DNA of 63,390 nt from Octopus sinensis (Eukaryota), in NCBI RefSeq assembly GCF_006345805.1, contig NW_021832250.1:1-63390 (forward strand), given 5' to 3'. Shown here in pieces: positions 18,723-49,920 of this stretch. Every line of letters begins with the position of its first letter. The stretch's first letter is position 1. The notes beneath the pieces were generated by a model. It saw nothing but the letters and a program-made list of their open reading frames with translations. It ran no database searches and had not been told where the DNA came from. The translations under genes and the position numbers were made by a program.

Positions 18723-20173
18723 CGCCCTGTAGTCTCCCGCCTCCCTTTTCCCCTCACTTACCACCCCACGACCCTACCTCTCCAACGCACCATTCTTCGA
18801 GCTTTCCGTCATCTCCAGTCCGACCCGTCCACTTCACACCTCTTCCCTAACCGACCCCTCCCCTCTTTCAAACGAGCCCATAACCTTCGAGACCTTTTGG
18901 TCCATAGCTCCTTCCCTGACCCTACCTCCGAACCTGGCTCGTTCCCCTGCTCCCGCCCACGTTGCCGCACTTGCCCTTACCTCTCCAACACCACCCTCCT
19001 CACTGGCACCTATCATCGACCCTATCTCATCATCAGCTCCTTCACCTGCACCTCCAGCAATATTATCTATTGCGTCTCTTGCTCTCTCTGCCATTCCCTG
19101 TACATCGGACAAACGGGACGCCGCTTGGCTGACCGGTTCGTGGAACACCTTCGTGACATCCGCCTTGCGAACGACACACCGGTCTCACGCCATTTCCGCT
19201 CCACCGGTCACTCCTTGCAACACCTGTCTGTGTTCGGTTTGTCCTTACACAGAGGCCATCCGGATTCCCGTTTGCGCCGTGAACAGGAATTAATCTTCTC
19301 TCTTCGCTCTTATACGCCATTTGGTCTCAACTCTCCCCCCTCCTCATCTAACCCCCCTCTCCCCCCTCCTCATCTAACCTCCCCCCGACCCCTACTTCTC
19401 TTCAGTTCTTCATCCTTTCACCCCTACTCCTCTTCCCTTCTTCCCTCTTTCTCCCTCCCTCCTTCTTCCCTCTTCCCCTTCCCTCTTTCTCTCTGCTCCC
19501 TCACTCCTCTTCTCTCTCTCTCTCTCACTCTCCCTCTATCCTCCATCCTCCCCTCCCCTCCTCTTCTCCTCTCCTTCCCTCTCCCCTTCTCTCCCCTCCT
19601 CTTCTCCTCTCCTTCCTTCTCCCCCTTCCCTCTCCTCTTCCCCCCTTTCTTTCTCCCCCTCCCCTATTCCCCTCCCCTCTCTCCCCCTTACCTCCCCCTC
19701 TTCCCTCATCTCCTCTCTCTACACTACACCATACGACTTTATACATCACATCATATATACATACACACGTCCAGACCTCTCATACGCACTAATACTCTCT
19801 CATACACACACACACACTCTTCTCATACACACACACACACTTATGTTGGAGCGAGGTCATTTAACCCTATTATCTCCCCTAATTTCGCTCTTGCGTCTCA
19901 CGTTTGATCTTTGACTTCTGGCCGAAATCAGATCGCCATGTTGATTCGCTAGCCTCTGCACGCATTTTTTTTTCTCTCCTTCTTTCTGTGTTTTTTCTCT
20001 GTGTATCTTTCTGTTGAAGAGCGTAGGCTCGAAACGTTAAAGACTTGTTTTATTTATATTTCCTGAGCGCCATACTAATACAATTGTTTGTTTGTATTCC
20101 ACCTGCCTTCGTCTTTTGTTTATTTCCGTAAACCTGCCTTCGTCTTTTGTCTATTTTCATAAAGCTTCCCGTT
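18723..20173 (+). mobile_element. 5'-truncated PLE (Neptune-like), copy 1: GIY-YIG domain + CT-rich tract + 3' UTR
   Basis: FPCSRPRCRTCPYL...FTCTSSNIIYCVSCSLCHSLYIGQTGRRLADRFVEHLRDIR...RLRREQELIFSL; flanked by (TA)n. Confidence 0.9.
20006..20043 (+). ncRNA. Minimal hammerhead-like motif (atypical CUGUUGA core)
   Basis: UCUUU-CUGUUGA-A-GAGC(GUAG)GCUC-GAAA-CGU-U^AAAGA. Stems I and II are perfect; A6 is replaced by U. Confidence 0.6.
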
Positions 20174-21082: not shown

Positions 21083-21783
21083 ATCCTCCATCCTCCCCTC
21101 CCCTCCTCTTCTCCTCTCCTTCCCTCTCCCCTTCTCTCCCCTCCTCTTCTCCTCTCCTTCCCTCTCCCCTTCTCTCCCCTCCTCTTCTCCTCTCCTTCCC
21201 TCTCCCCCTTCCCTCTCCTCTTCCCCCCTTTCTTTCTCCCCCTCCCCTATTCCCCTCCCCTCTCTCCCCCTTCCCTCTCCTCTTCCCCCCTTTCTTTCTC
21301 CCCCTCCCCCTCTTCCCTCATCTCCTCTCTCTACACTACACCATACGACTTTATACATCACATCATATATACATACACACGTCCAGACCTCTCATACGCA
21401 CTAATACTCTCTCATACACACACACACACTCTTCTCATACACACACACACACTTATGTTGGAGCGAGGTCATTTAACCCTATTATCTCCCCTAATTTCGC
21501 TCTTGCGTCTCACGTTTGATCTTTGACTTCTGGCCGAAATCAGATCGCCATGTTGATTCGCTAGCCTCTGCACGCATTTTTTTTTCTCTCCTTCTTTCTG
21601 TGTTTTTTCTCTGTGTATCTTTCTGTTGAAGAGCGTAGGCTCGAAACGTTAAAGACTTGTTTTATTTATATTTCCTGAGCGCCATACTAATACAATTGTT
21701 TGTTTGTATTCCACCTGCCTTCGTCTTTTGTTTATTTCCGTAAACCTGCCTTCGTCTTTTGTCTATTTTCATAAAGCTTCCCG

Positions 21784-37053: not shown

Positions 37054-37120
<67 letters not shown>

Positions 37121-37152
37121 GTGTGTGTGTGTGTGTGTGTGTGTGTCTCTTT

Positions 37153-37188
<36 letters not shown>

Positions 37189-37191
<3 letters not shown>

Positions 37192-37419
37192 AAAGTATAG
37201 AAGCCATCTTAATATGGCTAACCACATAGGGGAGGGGTGTTGCTGTAGCTCTATAGCCCCAGGAGATCGTCGTCTCCAGCTGGCTTTAGGCACCATTTCA
37301 GTGCCCTTGAAGTATTTGCAAAGGGAGGCCATCCCTTTCTCGCAAGCCTGAGTGATACGCTCGGACTAGTTTCGGGATTATTGTCCCTTATCAACGGGCG
37401 CTAACCACCAGGTCGCGAT
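37189..37419 (-). repeat. 3' part of unit 2 of a hammerhead-containing ~355-bp tandem repeat (retrozyme/pLTR-like)
   Basis: 231 bp nearly identical to 42860-43091; ends in (TA)n. Confidence 0.9.
37358..37400 (-). ncRNA. Type I hammerhead ribozyme, U3:A8 variant
   Basis: CGCCCG-UUGAUAA-GGGA(CAAUAA)UCCC-GAAA-CUAG-UC^CGAGCG. Stem I is 5/6 paired, stem II is 4 bp, ACUAGU is a palindrome, and the cleavage triplet is GUC. Confidence 0.85.
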
Positions 37420-37670
37420 TAATTCTTTATTACGATTATAAAATCAGTACATAGAAGAACAATACAGAAAATACATACAAAAAACAGTTAAGTGGTTCGT
37501 TTAAAAATTTCCAAAATATATGGATTATTCATTATACAAAAAACTGTATTTAAATTGTCCTTTGCATTGACTAATATAACATTACATTAGATTGAAATCT
37601 TACCGATATATTTTAAACCCCGGCAACCTATAAGGCCCTGCAGCTTTCCTTTCCTCTTCTCCATCCATAG

Positions 37671-40600
37671 TTAAACTGAGTTTCTGACACCCACCTTTTT
37701 CGCCACTTCCTTCCATCTTTTTTCATACACACCTCGTGGTAAGGTCTTCTTTTCCAGCCCCATTTTGCTCTTCAGATGATATCTGAAGTAAGTGAGCAAG
37801 CCGAGGCCTGAGACAAAGGATCCTATTGCGACTCCTTCTATTCTTGTCCGCCACATACATTATTTTACTACTGCAACCGTGCAGTGAAAACATGCCTCAC
37901 CTTCCTTCGAGAGTCCAGTTGGTGATATCATCTTAATCATAGACTCAGCCGACAGCTGTACTCGTCCCAGATGCGATAACACGTGTTCTGCGTAACTTAT
38001 CAGGTCTGACAACTGCCGACAGTGTACAAAAGCGTGCTGGACGGTTTCATCGTCCAACCCGCATCTTGGACATGTCGGTAGCACTGAAATTCCGTGCCAC
38101 GATAACTTCTCGCGAACAGGTAAAGCATTCCTATAACGCTGCCAGGCCAGGGATCTTTGGAAATTATCCAAATACCCCGTCATGAAAGTCTTTTTAAACA
38201 GGTTGGTAAGCTGGTCTTCGTCGAACCCCAGAGCCCCTCCTAGGACGTCATCGTTCTTTGCCTCTACCAACCTGCTATAAAATACCGAGGTGGTATTTCC
38301 GCAGCCGGCCTTGCTCGCCTTGTGGATCAGCATGAGTGCCTGTCGGCACTCCTTTTGCCATAAAGTCAGATTCCGTCTTTTGATGCAACCGGGTTTAAAA
38401 TTCACTAAGGAAGCCGATCTCGGGAAAAATTCCCCTGCCAGCGGACTCCACACCGTATCACCCTCCAGGTGGTGCCAGAGATGCTTCAGCCTCAACGCAT
38501 GTCTGCACATCATCAACCAAGGCATTCCTAACCCACCCTTTAACGGTTCCTGGCAGCAAACGGAGCGCCTCACAAGTGGCTTTCCTCCCTTCCACAAAAA
38601 AGCGGAAAAGGATTCGCTCCAACTTGCTATGCCATGAATCGGGGCAAGGGACAACGGTCAGGCGGTAAGTGATTACAGATGCAATGAACAGCTGTACCAC
38701 CTCCGCCCTTCCTTTCAAGGACAGAAACCTTCCAGACCAGGTCCGTACTATGGCCTCCACCTTGTCCGTCACCTCACTCCAATTCCTCTCCGTTTGGGAG
38801 TCTGGCCCAAACCAAACTCCTAGCAACTTAACAGGACCATCTGTCCAGTGTCCCACGGCACTGGACGATATCGACTTGCTCCTCCAGGTGCCGAGGCGTA
38901 AGCCAATCGACTTGTCCTTGTTAACTTTTGCTCCTGCCACCGCCTCGTATCCTCTGATAGCATCTTCTACACAAGGTAGCTGAGCCTCATTGGACACGAT
39001 GAGGGTGACGTCATCCGCATAAGCAGAAACCGTCCTCCCGCCTCCGATCTCACCCGGGTTACTTCTCAGTCTCTCCAACTTTTGCAGCAGTGGCTCGAGA
39101 GCCAACACGTACAAAAGTGGTGACAAGGGGCACCCTTGACGAACTGAACATTCGATCGAAAACGGTTCCGTTAGGTGACCGTTTATCTGAACGGTGGACT
39201 TGATGCCGCTATACATAGCGGAGATCCACCCGCGAAATTCAGGGCCCAGTCCAGCCGCTTCGAGGACCGTCGCCAGGTACTTATGGTCTACCCTATCGAA
39301 CGCTTTACTTTGGTCTAAATGGACCATTACCCCGCCCTTGCCGGTTAATTTACCCACCCTATCTAAGGTGTAGCGTATAAGGTGAAGATTGTCCTGGATC
39401 GACCTGCCTGGAATTGCACATGTCTGTGCTTTCCCTACAAGTTTCTCTACGACAGTCGTCAACCTTTTTGCCAACACCTTGGCCAAAATCTTTAACTCTA
39501 CATTAAGTAGAGTTATGGGCCTGTAACTACTAATGTTATCCTCCTTGCTCGGGTCTTTCTGGATTAGCGTCACCACTCCCCGGCTTACAGAACTGGGAAT
39601 TCTCCCGTTCTGCTGCCAGTTCGCGTAGACGCATGCCAGTATTCCCCCGAACAAGTCCGGCATACTTTGATAAAACTCGTAGGGCAGAGCATCCAACCCC
39701 GGCGACTTCTCCCCGGCGCATCCGGCCAGTACCCCCTCTATCTCCGCGGGAGTGATCGCTCCTTCACAGCACTCCACCTCACGCCCCGAGAGCCGCGGTC
39801 CGCCGGCTAGGAAGTCCTTTAAGGCCATCCCCCGCTCCAGCGAACCACCATCTCCCGAACGAGCGGGCGAAATGCTGGTGAAGAAACTTTTGCATCTCCT
39901 CCTGTCCATAGATCTTGTGTCCCTGTTCGTCAGTTAAAGACTTGATTGAAGCTTTGTTACCTCTCTGACTCTCCACTCGACGGGCCCATCCGGCAACGTT
40001 AATACCTTCTCGTTTCCCTGCGCGTAGCTTAGCTCTAACTCTGCAACCTTCGTGTTTAGAGTTAAGGTGACGGTACAATACCGTCCTTGCCGCCATCACT
40101 CCGGATGCAGAACCAGATTCCATTGCCTCGTTTAGATTCTTAACTAAATCGTCCTCTATCCTAGACCTATCTAACCTTAGCTGTTTGCTAAATCTAATGG
40201 ACTCTGAACGAATGGCTCTTTTGAGGGAGTGCCACCATCTGTTGTTAATGATGGTGCCACATAATGCCCTCTGTACTAACACCTTAATCCGGGTACGGAA
40301 GTCTTCACAATTCAAAATAGACTTGTTCATTTTCCAGTACCGGGTCCCTGTCTATGGCACATATCTAATTGCACCCTACAAGTCACAAATTTGTGATCCG
40401 TGTAAGGCACAATGTGGAACTGTGGACAACTAAACGTATCCTTATCTCTTTTCCTAACGAATATCCTATCTATATACGATCTGCGTGAGCCGTCGTTGTT
40501 ACTCCACGGCCACTGTGGAACGTTCGGCTCATCCAGTCGATAACGGTCTACTAGATTAAAGCTCTCTAGTAGACCCTTGAGGCTAGTGTTCCCCTTCCTA

Positions 40601-40959
40601 TTGGTTGAGCCAACACCGTCGACCCGCGCTTCGAGGACAGTGTTAAAGTCCCCTACTAAGACTACCGTTTTCGACGTCACTAAAAAGAGCTCCAGATTCC
40701 GAAAAAAACCCGACTGCCTACACTCATTCGGAGCGTAGACAGCTACCAACCTGAAGGACTGTTTACTTACGTGGGTCACATCCAGAACGACCAGCCTGCC
40801 TTCTGGGTCCAGAAAGACAGTACTTACCTGCAAGTCCAAGCTCTTCCTGATAAGGACTCCTCCTCGGCTAGGAGAAATAAATTTCTCGAAACCATTTAGA
40901 AGAGGCGAGAACGCTTGGGCCCCGTTCATCTTGGACTCGGTTACAATAGCTACGTCCAC
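37671..40959 (-). pseudogene. Tx1/L1 ORF2 (APE endonuclease, reverse transcriptase, C-terminal Cys domain), several frameshifts
   Basis: APE: VAIVTESK, VYAPN, LVGDFN, YIDRIFV, YTDHK. RT: KSPGLDALPYEFY, YRPITLLN, LDQSKAFDRVDH, VRQGCPLSP, AYADD. C-terminus: CPRCG..ETVQHAFVHC. Confidence 0.9.
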
Positions 40960-41069
40960 TCCGTGTGTCGTGAGGTCGTTCTAGAGACAAATTTGTTTCC
41001 ATTTCGACCCCATTCCACTCACATTCACACAACCCAGCTTTGCCATTGTCGGAGAGAGAGAAAAAAAAC

Positions 41070-42505
41070 TTACGGTTGGGACAGGGAGCATGACAGTTTA
41101 AATCTGCATGCTTCCCCTTCTTCCTCCCTTGTGGTCGTAGCTGCAGGGCTCTTAACCGGCGTTGCCATCGGGCTCTGGATAGGTGTGGTTGCCGGGGTTA
41201 TAGTAAGTTTGCCCTCCAGTATTTCGTTAGTTACGTCTCTGATAATGTTATTTTTAAAATGTTCTTGGAGTGTTTTTTCCTTCCACTCGTCTTCCTTTAT
41301 TTTTGCAAAACGAGTGGTTGACTTAGTGTCTGCAGACTTACTGAATAATTTCAGTTTTGAAAATTTAAAATACTTAAACACTCTATCGTTCCTCTCGTCG
41401 AATGCTACAATCTTTTCATTTTTTTTTATCAATTTTTTCCAATCTTGTTTTATGGGGTGGGGCTTGGCGAACTGTGTTCCAATGAATACAGTGCCGTGGG
41501 GGTAGGGCTGGGGAATTTGTTTTGTATGTATCTCTGCGGTGTTTGCTGATTTTTTCTTTGTTTGGGGAGGAGAGTCCAGGGTATTTTCTTTTTTTCTTTT
41601 GTGTGTCACCTGTGTAAATTCCATTTGTTCATTTCTATCTTCCGTTTCGATTCCCTTCCTTGTCGCAGTCTTGGGGTCTTTTTCCGCCTTTTCTTTTTCT
41701 GTGTTTGAAGCACTTTGAGGAGGGGCTTCGCTGTTTTTCTTTTTTTTATGCAGTTCGAGCGGACGTGACCCTTTTCACCACATTTGAAACACCTAGGTCT
41801 GCGCCCCTCCACTGAAACTCTCATTGAAATTCCCTCCTCAATAAATACCCTATCGGGTAAGTTTTCTAGCACATTATTTTCTGCCTGAACGAGGAGTTCG
41901 AGCGCTTGTCCCTTCCAGTTTACCTCCTCTTTCCTTTTCATCTGCAGAATTGAGACTTTCTGCTCTACGTCGTGCAGAACCGCCGCTGCTACCCACATTA
42001 TATCATATCCTCTTGGTATGTCTTCCACATATAGTTTCGCATTTCTTTTGCCCATATAGGTAGGTAGTAATATAATGTCCTCATTTTTTAAGGTCATTGA
42101 TGAAATCTCTCTTGCCACATCAGCCGAGTCGAAATGTGCTTCAACGGTAGCGCTGCGAGCACCTCGACCGACGTAGCGAATTTTGCTCCGCACCGGGGAC
42201 AAGCACTTCTCTACTATTTCGTTCTTCACGTCCATTATTTTTTTCTCTTTGTTACTGTAAACCTTGTACACGACTGTCTTGGCCTTTATTTCCTGTAATA
42301 TCGCTTGCGGCGGTACCAGTTTTATTTCGTTGCCTTCCTTTTTGACCAAGTTCCGGTATTCGAACAACTGTTCTATTTTGAATTCCACTTCCGTTACGGT
42401 TCCGCCCACTGCGGCCGAAAAAGACTGTTTTCTAACCTCGATATCCTTCTGTTCGCCTTTTCCCATCACGGGAAAGTCGCTCCTCGACGCGAAGTCGTAC
42501 TCCAT
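41070..42505 (-). pseudogene. Tx1/L1 ORF1 (gag-like, CCHC zinc knuckle), one frameshift
   Basis: ORFs 41606-42505 (RCFKCGEKGHVRSNC) and 41070-41624. Confidence 0.8.
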
Positions 42506-42717
42506 TTCTCAAATTATGAGAACCAATTTTTCAAAAAAATTACCCCGAAGGTAATAACAATGTTTATACACAGAATTTTCAGCCCCGTAGGGCGAAAATT
42601 ACCGTCACACAACGGACAACTGTTCAAATTCACGAGCAAACACAAATTAACGACGGACAAAATAGGCAGCTAACTTCTCAATACGCAGATGAAAGAGGGG
42701 TCCCTAGACGAGTGACA

Positions 42718-43139
42718 AACCACCAAGTCGCGATGAAAGACAAGGCTGCTTTGCAAATATATAAGAGTTTTTCTAGTGACGTCTGCCACTGATTTCGAAA
42801 AACTGACTGTAAGCATTATTAAATCTCAGAATGAGATGTAAATAGTAATCGCTCGATAATGTAAAGTATAGAAGCCATCTTAATATGGCTAACCACATAG
42901 GGGAGGGGGTGTTACTGTAGCTCTATAGCCCCAGGAGATCGTCGTCTCCAGCTGGCTTTAGACACCATTTTAGTGCCCTTGAAGTATTTGCAAAGGGAGG
43001 CCATCCCTTTCTCGCAAGCCTGAGTGATACGCTCGGACTAGTTTCGGGATTATTGTCCCTTATCAACGGGCGCTAACCACCAGGTCGCGATGAAAGAAGG
43101 CTGCTTTGCAAATATATAAGAGTTTTTCTAGTGACGTCT
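42718..43139 (-). repeat. Unit 1 (43139-42785) and start of unit 2 (42784-42718) of the hammerhead tandem repeat
   Basis: The 'tcgcgatgaaaga..aggctgctttgcaaatatataagagtttttctagtgacgtct' block recurs with a 355-bp period (ends 42784 and 43139). Confidence 0.9.
43030..43072 (-). ncRNA. Type I hammerhead ribozyme, U3:A8 variant (copy in unit 1)
   Basis: Identical to 37358-37400. Confidence 0.85.
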
Positions 43140-44300
43140 TTTCATACCTCGCTATGCGGGCAGCCCTGGCAGATACCTTTTGTTTGATGGTTTCTATGGT
43201 GGCATCAATATCAAGTATAGTTTTCATATTGTATTTTTTCAGCAATTTTTGAGTTTTTGTATGTTTGGTAGTCTTGTGAACCTTAAGGTTTTTCAAATAT
43301 TCAATGTCAGATCCAAATAGTTTAATTTGTTGTTGCAGACGCTCTTGCCAAGAAGGCTTTTTGTGGGAATGTTGCCGTTTTCTAATCTTTACACCACATA
43401 GGATCGTTGAGATTTTCGCGGATGCGGTTGAGATGTGTGATATCAACATCATTAGCTGAAATTATATCCTTAAGTGCAAGCTGGATTTTACCAATTATTT
43501 TCATGATTTGGTTAGAGTTGCAGATTTTTGGGAGTGTATCACGTTCATCCATGCTGGTTTCTTTAATTTTCAGCCATTCAATCATGATTTGATTTTTTAG
43601 CTCATGTAGTTCTCTTGGGTCAATATTTGTGTGACTTTCCTTATCTATTTGATGTTCATCTGTCTTAGTGTTTATGATTGGTTCAGGGAGTATTTCACTT
43701 TGCCTATCACTTATACTAGCTCTTTCAATCCTTACTTCGCTTTTATCAGCCCTGGGCTGGTCTATAATTATTTCCTCTGTATTATCTTCTCTAGCTGCAG
43801 CTTCGTTCATTTTATCCGATATTGCTTGTCTAACTTGATCAATCTCTACTTCAGTCAGTAATTTTTTTTTATAATGTTTCTTCTGACGTTGGCAAGTTTG
43901 TTACTGTCTATGTAGGGTCTTACTTCAGGGTGTTTCTGTCTCCAGTTTAAGTATGTTTGTACAGTGTTAGATTTACCTGTGGGGAAATATATGGCATGGT
44001 AGAAGGCCTCAAGAACTTCTTTATTATCTTCCCTAGACCATTTTTCCTTCTTTTTCGTTTGATTATTTGGTGACGAGCATGGATGGCCATCGTTGGAATA
44101 TTCCGGTTGTGGGGTACGTCCAGCTCCTGTGTGTTGGGAAGATTTGATCCAGTAGCTGATTTTTCAATCAGAATTTGGTTCAATTTTCGGGTACGTGGTC
44201 TATTATTATTATTATTATTATTTTGTAATGCGCGCGACGACCAATGCGGTTTATTGTTTGATTTGTTGACATTGAAGCATGACGAGCTTCCATTCTTATA
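43140..44300 (-). mobile_element. R4/Dong-like LINE 5' portion (N-terminal ORF), 3'-truncated at the hammerhead repeat
   Basis: TVTNLPTSEE/KLANVRR-type region; WQERLQQQI...IETIKQKVSARAARIARYEK. Confidence 0.65.
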
Positions 44301-45759: not shown

Positions 45760-47200
45760 TATTGATATTACAATGAATGAGAGAATTCTATAAATTTGTC
45801 AGGGAGATGGCAGATCTGTAGTCTTCGAATTAGCTTTCTCCTTTCTGGTTTTGAGTAGCCTAATGCCTCAAGATTGGTATTTAGGCAGTGTGTTACATAT
45901 ACCAGGGCCCCAATTATTATAGGTATAAACCTGAACTTGTAGTCTGGACGGAGTAACTGCAGATTTCTCATTAGTTCAGCATAGGTGTTCTCCTTTTCAC
46001 TGATCTTCAGCTTTATGTTAACATCTACTGGGCAGCTAATTTCCACAACTGTGCACAGTCTCTCTTCTCTATCAAAAATTATTATATCAGGTCTCTTATG
46101 CTTACATTTTCTTCATGTGGACATTCTACCAATATTTCTTTTTATTATGAGTGGCTATGGCTTCTACCCTATTGTGGGTTCTTATTTCTTTGTCCTCGGG
46201 ATTATCCTTCCGGCGAATTTCATTATAGAGAGTCCTAGCTACAACGTCACTTCTCATCGATAGATAATACCATGATGACAAATGCTTATGATATGGGTGA
46301 TATCTTCAATTTGAACTCAACAAATCCTGTATCGGTTGTAACATTTTGCTGCTTTTCCTGCATCTGTCCCTTTTGTGCATCAGGTATTGGTTGATATTTC
46401 CTGTTCCTGGATTACAAACGCATACCCTTCAAAGTGGGAGGGAGTAATTCAGCTATTCGTCCATGATAAACTGCTTTGATGATCGAGGGTACTATCATTA
46501 TGGAGCTTTCTACTAACATATCCATGCATAGTCTTCTGCTCATATAGACTCATTCTTTCATCTGATGATAAATTGCAGTAGAGTCGCACGACTTCGTTGG
46601 GCATGTATTCTAGGTTGTTAGACAAAGAGTGTTGCTCAAGGAGGTACCTTCCAAGTCTTATGATCAGCCTCATGCATGTAAACTTGGTCAAGGAATGGAC
46701 TTCGACACTTGGTGGTTAAAAGATGTTGCCGAAGGGATATAAGACATTCAAAGGCATTTGGATCTATGTTAAGCCTCTGCCACCTTGTTTTCGTTTTAGG
46801 TAGAAGCGGTCTACGTCACTGTTTATGTGGACATTATGTGTGCGTGTTAGCATTTTTCGTGTTTGGCTCGGATCTCATCAAGCGTCCAATCAAGCAGCCC
46901 AAATATTGTTATGAGTACTGACACTGCAAACACGCTGTGGGTCACTGTTTTATTGAATGCAGAGAGTTCTGAGGTCTAAATTTTCTTTATTCGGTTGTAA
47001 TATTCTTTGCAGGAAGAACCAGAAAAAGTTGCTGGCTTATGCGCAGTACATATCTCTCATCTGTTGTCTTGGAAGTTTTCCAGACAGACGACGATCTCTC
47101 CAACCCAGAATAATTCATTTTGTTGTACTACAGATTTCTATTATATCATTTACATCCTTAAGTAAATCAAATTAACATTCATATGTAGACACATTTTAGA
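45760..47200 (-). mobile_element. R4/Dong-like LINE C-terminal part (RT end, CCHC, RLE), degenerate
   Basis: HFEGYAFVIQEQEISTKYL; EISCPVDVNIKLKISEKENTYAELMRNLQLL..FIPIIIGAL. Confidence 0.75.
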
Positions 47201-48189: not shown

Positions 48190-49920
48190 TCCATGTTATT
48201 TCTTTATTACCCACCAGGGGCTACGAAGAATGGCGGACATAACAAAACATGGGGGACATAGAACAATATGATAAAATTTATGAGCAAATGAAAATGAAAA
48301 AAGGATAATATGAAAGCGATGCTAACGGCCCCCTCCGCCAGCATCACTTACCTGTCCTTTTGTTTTCACTGTCACCTGAATGTTCATTCCCAATACGAAG
48401 ACCATCCATATCCATTCTTACTCCGAAACTGTCCTCCATATATTCCACGAATTCATCGCTCATTCTTGTATCTTTCACCTCCCAATTCTCCCTTTCACAC
48501 CTCAACACAAACTCATCTATATTCTTCTTTTCCAGCACTGCATATCTGGTCCCATCCATTTCATACCATTCATACTCCTCCATTACCCTTTCAACCTCTT
48601 TCTGTTCAGTCACAATATAAATGTTCGGCCTGGGTTCGTTTTCAAACTCTTGTCTGTCTGTATTGTTATTTTTCTTTTGTTTTCTTGTTGGAGGGGAGCG
48701 GGTGGGTTCACTGTCTGCAGGGGAAGGGTGGGATTCAGAGGGTGCGGTGGTGTTGGGGTGGGTTGGGGCTTCGCACAGTTTTTCTTTTTCTTTCTTTTTC
48801 TCTTTTTTCTTCCTTCTTCCCACTCTTGTTGCATCTCCTCTTCTTCTGTCGTTTCTTTTTCCCTTTGGTTCTCTTTGGTTTCTTCCTCTTTTGGGGCTTC
48901 CGCGACGATTTCCTTTTCTTTTTCCTTTGGTTCTCTTTGGTTTCTTCCTCTTTTGGGGCTTCCGCGACGATTTCCTTTTCTTTTTCCTTTAGTGGTGGAG
49001 GGCAGTAGGCTCTTATGTGACCCCTCATGCCACACTTGTAGCACCTGGGCGCCCTACCCTCCACCCACACTCTCATAATAATATTTCCAGTTTTTATACT
49101 GTCCGTAAGCTTTTCTATAACTTCCGCCTCCGTCTGTATGTTCATTACTAGTGTGGCACCTCTCACGCCTTCATATTTCATAATGGCGTGGAGGATGTCC
49201 ACTTTATCTTCATTTCCTTTGATAACCGCAGCCGTTATTAATTCGCCCTCTAGGTGTGGAGGTATTCCTTCCACCCTAATTCTGGTGGTCCTTCTATTCA
49301 AATACGAGGGGAACAAGTAAAACTTTTCTGTACTCACCACCTTGGCTGCTATATTCCTGGCTGCTTTCTCACTTTTAAATTGTACCGTTATGGTTCCATA
49401 TTCTAATCCTTTTGCCATGTACACAATTTCTTCTCCTGTCCGTTTGAAAGCCTCTTCAATTGCTTCCATGTTAATCACTTCCATTTTTCTACCTCCATTC
49501 ATAAATACTTTATATTTAATGGTTCTACGATGGAACCAGTCTCCGCGCCCTGCTAGAGGCAACAGCTCAACCTCTCCGTTCTCCTCCTCCTTCATGAACT
49601 CCTGGAAGTCCGTCAACTTAGCCAGGTCTATCTCTTTTTCTGTTGACTTCTTCGTTATACCTGCATAGGTGCTTTCCATTTTTTTCACCGCCAACTCCTC
49701 CTCAGATGTCGACGAATTTTCAGAGAAATTTCTCCCTTCCATCTCATCCGTTTGGTAGAGGCGGCTCATAGTCGCCTCAGACCGAAAAACGACCCCCCGA
49801 ACAGAAAACGTGCGACGCACAGAACCAGTGCGACGCGAAACCGCACCAACCGACGTTCCAATTCCGCAACCACAATTCACTTTTTGTTGTTTTTCTTTTT
49901 TAACCGAATTTTACAGAGCG
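48190..49920 (-). mobile_element. Second ORF1-only Tx1/L1-derived element
   Basis: ORF 48735-49880 with RCYKCGMRGHIRAYC is homologous in layout to ORF1 at 41606-42505. It has a 62-bp internal duplication, no ORF2, and a 3' end 'gtagcccctggtgggtaataaagaaata'. Confidence 0.75.

Follow-up and report, generated by a model that had tools for sequence, protein, structure and literature searches.

Within a 63,390-nucleotide stretch of Octopus sinensis DNA (NCBI RefSeq assembly GCF_006345805.1, contig NW_021832250.1, positions 1 to 63,390 of the forward strand; hereafter the window), positions 37,189 to 43,139 hold a full-length long interspersed nuclear element (LINE) inserted in a 357-nt repeat that bears a predicted hammerhead ribozyme. 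Together with the genome-wide junctions described below, this locus very probably holds a dead member of an L1/Tx1-type LINE family that inserts site-specifically at a 14–17-bp target in the hammerhead-bearing repeat. The locus is organized as follows, in the order of the minus strand (TSD, target-site duplication; ORF, open reading frame; MFE, minimum free energy).

43139→42783, minus strand: hammerhead-repeat unit 1, a complete 357-nt monomer without the LINE (direct repeats D3–D6; BLAST of the unit against the window)
43075–43091, minus strand: unoccupied LINE target site in unit 1, ATCGCGACCTGGTGGTT, with the same letters as the TSD; scored empty
43019–43084, minus strand: hammerhead 1, type I, predicted cleavage GUC^C at 43036^43035 (read by hand; covariation; MFE stems I and II)
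42782→42718, minus strand: initial 65 nt of unit 2, with the upstream TSD copy (42718–42734) at the end
37420–42717, minus strand: L1/Tx1-type LINE of 5,298 bp, full length, defective (ORFs and Pfam)
37403–37419, minus strand: downstream TSD copy, ATCGCGACCTGGTGGTT, which gives the distal 5' strand of stem I to hammerhead 2
37347–37412, minus strand: hammerhead 2, identical to hammerhead 1, predicted cleavage at 37364^37363
37189–37346, minus strand: remainder of unit 2 after hammerhead 2, ending at about unit position 281
37057–37188, strand not applicable: (TA)n/(TG)n microsatellite abutting the repeat end

The LINE splits unit 2 into 42782→42718 and 37419→37189 (minus strand), and hammerhead 2 starts 8 nt past its last base. 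The same 17 nt, ATCGCGAC(C/T)TGGTGGTT, are present on both sides of the element; on the plus strand, the copies read AACCACCAGGTCGCGAT at 37403–37419 and AACCACCAAGTCGCGAT at 42718–42734 and are identical at 16 of 17 positions. These data confirm the original prediction of a 5,298-bp LINE lying in unit 2 with a 17-bp TSD. The unambiguous duplication is 14 nt (ATCG....C.GGTG) in most other copies, and 3 nt of the 17-nt duplication in the window may be shared by coincidence with the LINE's own 5' end. The tandem repeat proposed at ~355 bp is real and has a unit of 357 nt, but it spans only ~1.8 units, up to the microsatellite, and forms no long array. The point at which unit 2 stops, near unit position 281, is a common end point among other genomic copies. 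A direct-repeat search of the window linked both hammerhead regions through repeat D3 (5,672-nt offset, 97% identity); the 357-bp repeat is absent from the Tandem Repeats Finder output for the window because the LINE splits it. At the opposite end, unit 1 begins abruptly at unit position 1 and abuts Lys-rich overlapping frames of 102–172 aa (window 43140–44300, minus strand) that have no Pfam match; unit 1 is either 5'-truncated against this region or adjoined by another element.

To describe insertion across the genome, we searched the same 2.72-Gb assembly and read junctions from 30 3'-end and 30 5'-end loci, sampled as the best-scoring copies (90 loci were examined in total). The last 300 nt of the LINE returned 334 first-look candidates, with copies 96–98% identical, and the first 300 nt returned 215 candidates, with copies 83–92% identical. 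All 30 5' junctions and 29 of the 30 3' junctions fall at one site and in one orientation, which strongly supports the proposal of a family targeting a retrozyme or pseudo-long terminal repeat (pLTR) beside its ribozyme. The target has the consensus ATCGNNNNCNGGTG(R)TT and is 14–17 nt long. The 3' ends read ...AATAAAGAATTA|(0–3 nt)ATCR....C.GGTG.TT, all in the hammerhead sense, the exception being a rearranged copy (L047). Most 3' junctions run into the hammerhead; in two, a related LINE follows instead, starting with its 5' end and ORF1, which makes a LINE–target–LINE tandem. The 5' ends read ...TTCATCG....C.GGTG|(G/T)TTTG(TC)ACTCGTCTAGGG, with the upstream part of the repeat before the junction; one of them is preceded by the tail of another LINE. 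In the 19 elements with paired junctions the duplication is present, and the differences between its two copies are CpG-type transitions, as in the window.

Pattern searches extended these observations. The 30-nt LINE tail has 53 genome matches versus 0 in a reversed control, and the junction pattern TAATAAAGA-N2-9-ATCRNNNNCNRGTG has 104 matches versus 9 in the control, so that the genome-wide search for same-site copies suggested in the original prediction returned a positive answer. The 104 matches span at least five tail types (AATTA, AAAATTTC, TAAATTC, TAAATCCA and TTTT/TTTA); several LINE subfamilies with different tails use the target site, sometimes as LINE–target–LINE tandems, and TAATAAAGA, which includes AATAAA, is the one string kept in all tail subfamilies, the tails being otherwise unlike. 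Since genome-wide junctions recur at one site, chance landing is excluded. The target followed by the 5' half of the hammerhead has 1,008 genome matches versus 0 in the control; on these strict patterns, about 1 target in 10 is occupied by a LINE.

The flanks fall in diverged repeat subfamilies, among them ATCGCGACCTGGTGGTT..GTTGATAAG and ATCGAAAACCGGTGATT..GCTGATGAC; some have U3 cores with GGTGGTT, some C3 cores with GGTGATT, and others differ further. Such variety in the flanks beside nearly identical LINE ends leads us to interpret the flanks as targets and not as cargo. The presence of hammerhead-bearing sequence after nearly every 3' end could also be read as the LINE carrying this segment as its own 3' module, with no pre-existing target. 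We give this almost no credence: the repeat continues upstream of every 5' junction, with the 14–17-bp duplication; target-plus-hammerhead sites number at least 1,008, far above the ~100 LINE junctions, with many of the sampled ones unoccupied; and the downstream sequence diverges into subfamilies where the LINE does not. The TSDs, divergent flanks and empty sites likewise argue against a segmental-duplication origin of the copies, against insertion of the repeat beside LINE ends and against the hammerhead being part of the LINE, three ideas that we rejected.

Further features of the junctions merit description. The 3' flanks of two loci (L033 and L060) belong to a less closely related hammerhead-like repeat, whose site is ATCGTCAGCTGGCAGG, suggesting that the predicted endonuclease tolerates a more distant version of the target. 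The site in this repeat reads ATCGTCAGCT(A/G)GCAGGC, and the associated hammerhead-like motif has a CCGAUGA-type core, GAAAC and GUC. LINE–target junctions also occur at ~5.5-kb spacing (C6:92146085/92151586/92157123, C22:28417214/28422751 and C9:73400435/73406016, where C numbers denote contigs of the assembly); these are head-to-tail LINE arrays with one target copy between elements, as is typical of site-specific LINEs. The LINE 5' terminus occurs in two forms, TTTTG|ACTCG and (G/T)TTTGTC|ACTCG (L061–L090), the latter resembling the target continuation GGTG-ATTGTC-G even where the local target differs. This resemblance hints that joining involved microhomology or that the RNA carried a few bases derived from the target.

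The original prediction described identical hammerheads at 43030–43072 and 37358–37400. The two 43-nt strings are letter-identical and covariation supports the fold, but Rfam reports neither and the core reads UUGAUAA (U3/A8) and not CUGAUGA. As predicted, the GUC^C sites (43036^43035 and 37364^37363) lie 5,672 nt apart. In our manual reading of the window copy, distal stem I pairs GGUGGU with AUCACU, proximal stem I pairs CGCCCG with CGAGCG with one mismatch, and stem II is formed by GGGA and UCCC, with GAAA; stem III comprises 2 bp within the palindrome ACUAGU and is followed by GUC^C. Relative to the conserved CUGANGA...GAAA...UH core, the window copies (UUGAUAA...GAAA...GUC^C) deviate at positions 3 and 8, and the canonical CUGAUGA core is found in many other genomic copies.

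To assess the fold, we aligned 43 distinct copies out of the 90 genomic loci and used slid pairing partners as controls. Overall, 90.1% of cells are paired versus 28–49% in the slid controls, and compensatory change affects 10 pairs versus 0–2, with stems I, II and III each contributing. The tertiary 3–8 pair is UA in 21 copies, CG in 12, UG in 9 and other or unpaired in 1; U3–A8 covariation is a documented natural variant in the hammerheads of Penelope-like elements (PLEs) (PMC4209133). Distal stem I is paired in 98% of cells, through target positions 11–16 (GGTGRT) and AUCAC(U) after the cleavage site, and the stem III variants (ACUAGU, ACCGGU, ACUGCAGU and ACCGCGGU) all remain palindromic. 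The MFE fold of one hammerhead contains stems I and II, including the distal stem I pairing, with a z-score of −1.1 that is not significant alone. PLE hammerheads have a helix III of 1–2 bp with a palindromic loop and are thought to act as dimers (PMC4209133). On this evolutionary evidence we accept the motif as a putative type-I, dimer-type hammerhead.

Elsewhere in the window, an identical 36-nt string, TTGAAGAGCGTAGGCTCGAAACGTTAAAGACTTGTT, occurs at 20014–20049 and 21626–21661 (plus strand), 1,612 bp apart, and matches a loose hammerhead-core regular expression. We rejected it as a hammerhead for want of a convincing stem II; it is probably an unrelated direct repeat.

The target and the ribozyme motif overlap. 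The 3' half of the target (GGTGGTT in the window) is itself the distal 5' strand of hammerhead stem I, which revises the earlier view that the TSD ends 2 nt short of that stem. The LINE recognizes this strand plus ~10 nt upstream. The target is conserved across repeat subfamilies because its 3' half belongs to stem I, a constancy presumably kept by selection on the ribozyme, and the duplicated stretch restores the stem I strand, so that the LINE has an undamaged hammerhead downstream. We propose that an endonuclease of the apurinic/apyrimidinic endonuclease (APE) type would nick the bottom strand immediately 5' of ATCG and cut the top strand 14–17 nt downstream, and that the nicked target would prime reverse transcription, probably aided by pairing of an RNA 3' trailer that reads into the target. 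The AATAAA near the LINE 3' end suggests that polyadenylation a few nucleotides into the target would supply such a target-complementary trailer. The main gain for the LINE would be that a conserved sequence present in many copies offers a 'safe haven', as it does for other Tx1-group LINEs with specific targets.

We next consider the two hammerheads that bracket the LINE in the window. An intact same-sense hammerhead lies ~353 nt upstream in only 3 of the 30 full-length copies (the window copy, L064 and L069), and a full upstream unit is detected by homology in 5–6; in the remaining copies, the target either stops 160–280 nt upstream or gives way to an inverted partner. What stays constant in the family is a single hammerhead immediately 3' of the LINE; the bracket is an accident of the window locus, where the target copy happened to be ~1.8 units. 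These counts do not support the alternative in the original prediction, a chance fusion yielding an autonomous retrozyme, as a family property. Under that alternative, the LINE plus one monomer between two hammerheads would replicate as a unit, excised as a 5,672-nt RNA and possibly circularized. The three copies with an upstream hammerhead are compatible with it, and hammerhead cleavage products can be ligated into circles (PMC7229834), but 27 of 30 full-length copies have no intact upstream same-sense hammerhead, the flanking repeats, drawn from various subfamilies around LINE copies of 96–98% identity, have not been inherited along with the element, and the window LINE is frameshifted. We consider this scenario highly improbable.

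The invariant downstream hammerhead raises a different question, namely whether the site was chosen because the hammerhead would cut read-through RNA ~62 nt past the LINE end, leaving a trailer, made of the target and the 5' part of the hammerhead, whose pairing with the nicked target would position reverse transcription; in copies with an upstream unit, the RNA 5' end would be set by a further cut there. Insertions all in the hammerhead sense, with a duplication that rebuilds stem I beside the LINE end, would fit such a role, as would the absence of an A-tail from the copies. Ribozyme processing of a target co-transcript has a precedent in R2 (PMC3774820), and metazoan retrozymes are reported to be highly transcribed (PMC7229834). 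A sequence-specific endonuclease alone, however, fixes orientation, and ordinary polyadenylation 10–30 nt downstream of the conserved AATAAA, which lies 6 nt before the end, already gives a target trailer. Priming from a cleaved RNA end would occasionally leave a 3' flank that stops at the cleavage site, and no such flank occurs in the sample. A lone hammerhead with a helix III of 2–3 bp should cleave poorly (PMC4209133), and several of the downstream hammerheads, which lie 8–70 nt beyond the LINE 3' end, have mutated cores (L035, L046 and L049). Ribozyme assistance of this kind is conceivable but, on balance, unlikely.

The site-specific LINE itself has the following organization (UTR, untranslated region; EN, endonuclease; RT, reverse transcriptase).

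42717→42509, minus strand: 5' UTR
42508→41606, minus strand: ORF1 frame, with a CCHC knuckle at ~41794–41750 (Pfam zf-CCHC)
40980→40327, minus strand: EN (Pfam Exo_endo_phos, E 1e-11)
39933→38458, minus strand: RT (Pfam RVT_1, E 2e-34)
38657→37860, minus strand: zf-RVT C-terminus (Pfam zf-RVT, E 1e-8)
37426–37431, minus strand: AATAAA polyadenylation-type signal, 6 nt before the LINE 3' end

The 3' UTR terminates in ...AATAAAGAATTA without an A-tail. The nearest solved protein to ORF2 is human L1 ORF2p (E 3e-59), with R2 far behind (E 3.5e-22). Pfam detected zf-CCHC in ORF1 but no L1-type Transposase_22 match. ORF2 combines an APE-type endonuclease, an RT and a C-terminal Cys-rich domain and is accompanied by a separate ORF1, which is the architecture of the Tx1 clade, and the junctions demonstrate sequence-specific insertion, a property typical of, though not universal in, that clade. 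Membership of the Tx1 clade is thus plausible from L1-superfamily architecture and target specificity; the homologues returned carry no clade names. The repeat annotation of Octopus vulgaris includes 13 recently active L1-Tx1 families (PMC13282606).

As the original prediction stated, the window copy is frameshifted: the ORF list and Pfam matches spread ORF2 over at least four separate frames. In a genome-wide protein search, many copies align from residue 1 of the window RT frame, and the aligned stretch includes 26 out-of-frame residues upstream of the linker/RT frameshift; this frameshift is therefore common to these copies, several of which belong to the tail family of the window. Six copies have open frames of 751–753 aa. 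Because the ORF2 frameshift seems common to its copies, the window LINE subfamily (~53 copies) was probably amplified in trans by intact relatives. Other copies, at 82–92% identity, have open frames of up to 1,181 aa. In the 82%-identity group, three copies (open frames 936–1,134 aa) are followed by AAAATTTC-type junction matches 1.24 kb downstream, so that a long ORF2 may survive in at least one hammerhead-targeting LINE subfamily. In most of the sampled copies, ORF1 is cut short at ~290–299 aa. Relatives with long open frames are often clustered, as on contig C28 (4.4–5.3 Mb) and contig C18 (49.10–49.22 Mb).

The target repeat resembles known ribozyme-bearing retroelements. The 357-nt unit yielded 2,145 first-look candidates in the 2.72-Gb genome, and scored copies are 83–100% identical. 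A typical copy is ~1.1 units long, running from unit position 303–324 through 357 into 1–328/330, so that its 3' end is constant and a short stretch is repeated at the two termini. Head-to-head inverted pairs occupy many loci, and a few loci contain arrays of up to ~4 units (L022). The unit has no ORF and, as a 357-bp sequence bearing the predicted hammerhead and present in 1.1–4 tandem units per locus, conforms to the definition of retrozymes as non-coding tandem repeats of ~170–400 bp with a type-I hammerhead. PLE insertions are marked by partial tandems, an inverted 5'-truncated partner, a 30–40-bp tail and a preference for (TA)n (PMC8557442), and the octopus repeat occurs in inverted pairs, carries a terminal tail and lies in a (TA)n context. 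By its architecture, the repeat looks like a PLE derivative or 'non-LTR retrozyme' (LTR, long terminal repeat). It shares with metazoan retrozymes and PLE pLTRs the ~357-nt non-coding unit, the putative type-I hammerhead, a palindromic helix III of 2–3 bp, U3–A8/C3–G8 covariation, partial tandems, inverted head-to-head pairs and the (TA)n context; unlike them, octopus copies are mostly 1.1–2 units long and have no adjacent PLE ORF in the 90 loci.

The mobilizer of metazoan retrozymes is still debated, and 'LINEs or PLEs' have been proposed (PMC7229834). The octopus LINE might itself mobilize the repeat or expand its arrays, nicking repeats at the target so that retrozyme RNA is reverse-transcribed there in trans. 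Arrays of up to ~4 units do exist, and the window LINE subfamily seems to be mobilized in trans, given its common frameshift. We nevertheless regard this role as improbable: dispersed repeats show the PLE hallmarks of ~1.1 units, a fixed 3' end, terminal redundancy, inverted pairs and (TA)n context (PMC8557442), a recent preprint ties animal retrozymes to PLEs (bioRxiv 10.64898/2026.07.22.740005) and we found no signature specific to LINE-mediated array growth. A composite scenario, doubtful in our view, is that the LINE co-opted the hammerhead, whose cleavage of read-through RNA, perhaps as a dimer with a second hammerhead, would form the 3' end of the template with a target-complementary trailer, and that it perhaps also copies retrozyme RNA into the nicked site; the LINE would then be both a parasite and a mobilizer or array-builder of animal retrozymes.

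Several observations weigh against the interpretation of the locus as a site-specific insertion in a ribozyme-bearing repeat. Rfam reports no hammerhead across the whole window at the gathering score, none at E ≤ 10 in 42700–43200 and none at E ≤ 10 in a canonical-core copy (L054), where only spurious microRNA matches on microsatellites appear. The hammerhead models of Rfam 15 miss the whole class of short-helix-III hammerheads, canonical-core copies included. Such hammerheads cleave weakly in vitro and poorly as monomers (PMC4209133). The sampled copies are the youngest, because the best-scoring ones were taken. Eight ORF2-similar copies on contig C1, outside the tail family of the window, have no strict target match nearby, and neither target nor hammerhead was found near the 3' end of an Argonauta hians relative (61% protein identity) or the 3' ends of two European Nucleotide Archive (ENA) relatives (~50% protein identity). 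The specificity may be confined to the lineage studied here; the Argonauta and ENA comparison is uninformative on the conservation of targeting. Finally, no ORF for an RT or GIY-YIG protein (PLE-like) lies within 1.5 kb of the 90 sampled loci or next to the window repeat, and the sampled repeat copies are therefore non-autonomous.

One relative at ~50% identity (L092; ENA ERZ26052130 ctg11195c) is arranged as perfect head-to-tail copies with a period of 7,547 bp; the spacer is T-rich, and the array has no hammerhead. L092 could be a separate relative with site specificity.

Target-specific LINEs are known for ribosomal RNA (rRNA), small nuclear RNA (snRNA), transfer RNA (tRNA) and 5S genes, for telomeric and microsatellite repeats, and for one DNA transposon. 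Tx1L reportedly inserts in the Xenopus Tx1D transposon, Keno in U2 snRNA genes, Mutsu in 5S rRNA genes and Dewa in tRNA arrays, and Kibi and Koshi are said to target microsatellites. The octopus LINE resembles these Tx1-group elements in its APE-type EN, RT and C-terminal Cys motif, in its separate ORF1 with a CCHC knuckle, in its precise, fixed-orientation insertion in a multicopy sequence, and in its short TSDs, lack of an A-tail and LINE–target–LINE arrays; like Tx1L, it targets another mobile element. It differs from them in that its target is a ribozyme motif, stem I of a predicted type-I hammerhead in a PLE-like or retrozyme repeat. In line with the original prediction, which knew of no description in cephalopods, we found no LINE homing to a hammerhead or retrozyme target in the literature searched, including PMC7229834, PMC4209133, PMC8557442 and bioRxiv 10.64898/2026.07.22.740005; PMC4640811 has target-specific non-LTR elements as its subject.

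R2 and the LINEs with ribozymes like that of hepatitis delta virus (HDV) offer a second comparison (PMC3774820). They and the octopus LINE are alike in being site-specific, co-transcribed with the target and associated with a self-cleaving ribozyme at the junction, which in the octopus is predicted. In R2, the ribozyme is element-encoded, HDV-like and located at the 5' junction, whereas the octopus hammerhead is owned by the target and lies just 3' of the LINE; the Rfam scan scored no ribozyme family within the LINE (37420–42717), which by this measure has no element-encoded ribozyme at its own 5' junction. The endonucleases differ as well, being restriction-like in R2 and of the APE type in the octopus LINE.

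Our data would add the hammerhead motif of PLE-like or retrozyme repeats as a new target class for LINEs, with one retroelement landing on the selectively constrained catalytic RNA motif of another. With ~100 junctions and more than 1,000 strict-pattern target sites, a single genome provides a natural system in which to ask whether a LINE borrows a host ribozyme to form its RNA ends, by what route an APE endonuclease gains 14–17-bp specificity, and whether LINEs contribute to the dynamics of retrozymes, whose mobilizer is debated. Because Rfam does not detect these hammerheads, ribozyme-linked repeats are under-annotated in cephalopods.

Two further frames lie on the minus strand of the window, beyond the hammerhead repeat. 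At 48735–49910, a second ORF1-like frame of 391 aa contains a CYKCGMRGHIRAYC knuckle and has a layout like that of the LINE's ORF1; it shows no nucleotide similarity to the LINE and no Pfam match at E ≤ 0.01, and is probably part of another, older LINE of the same broad group. At 45768–46112, a 114-aa frame with no Pfam match reads RPDIIIFD...VVEISCPVD...IPIIIGAL, which we take to resemble the PD-(D/E)xK-like C-terminal module of some invertebrate retroelement proteins.

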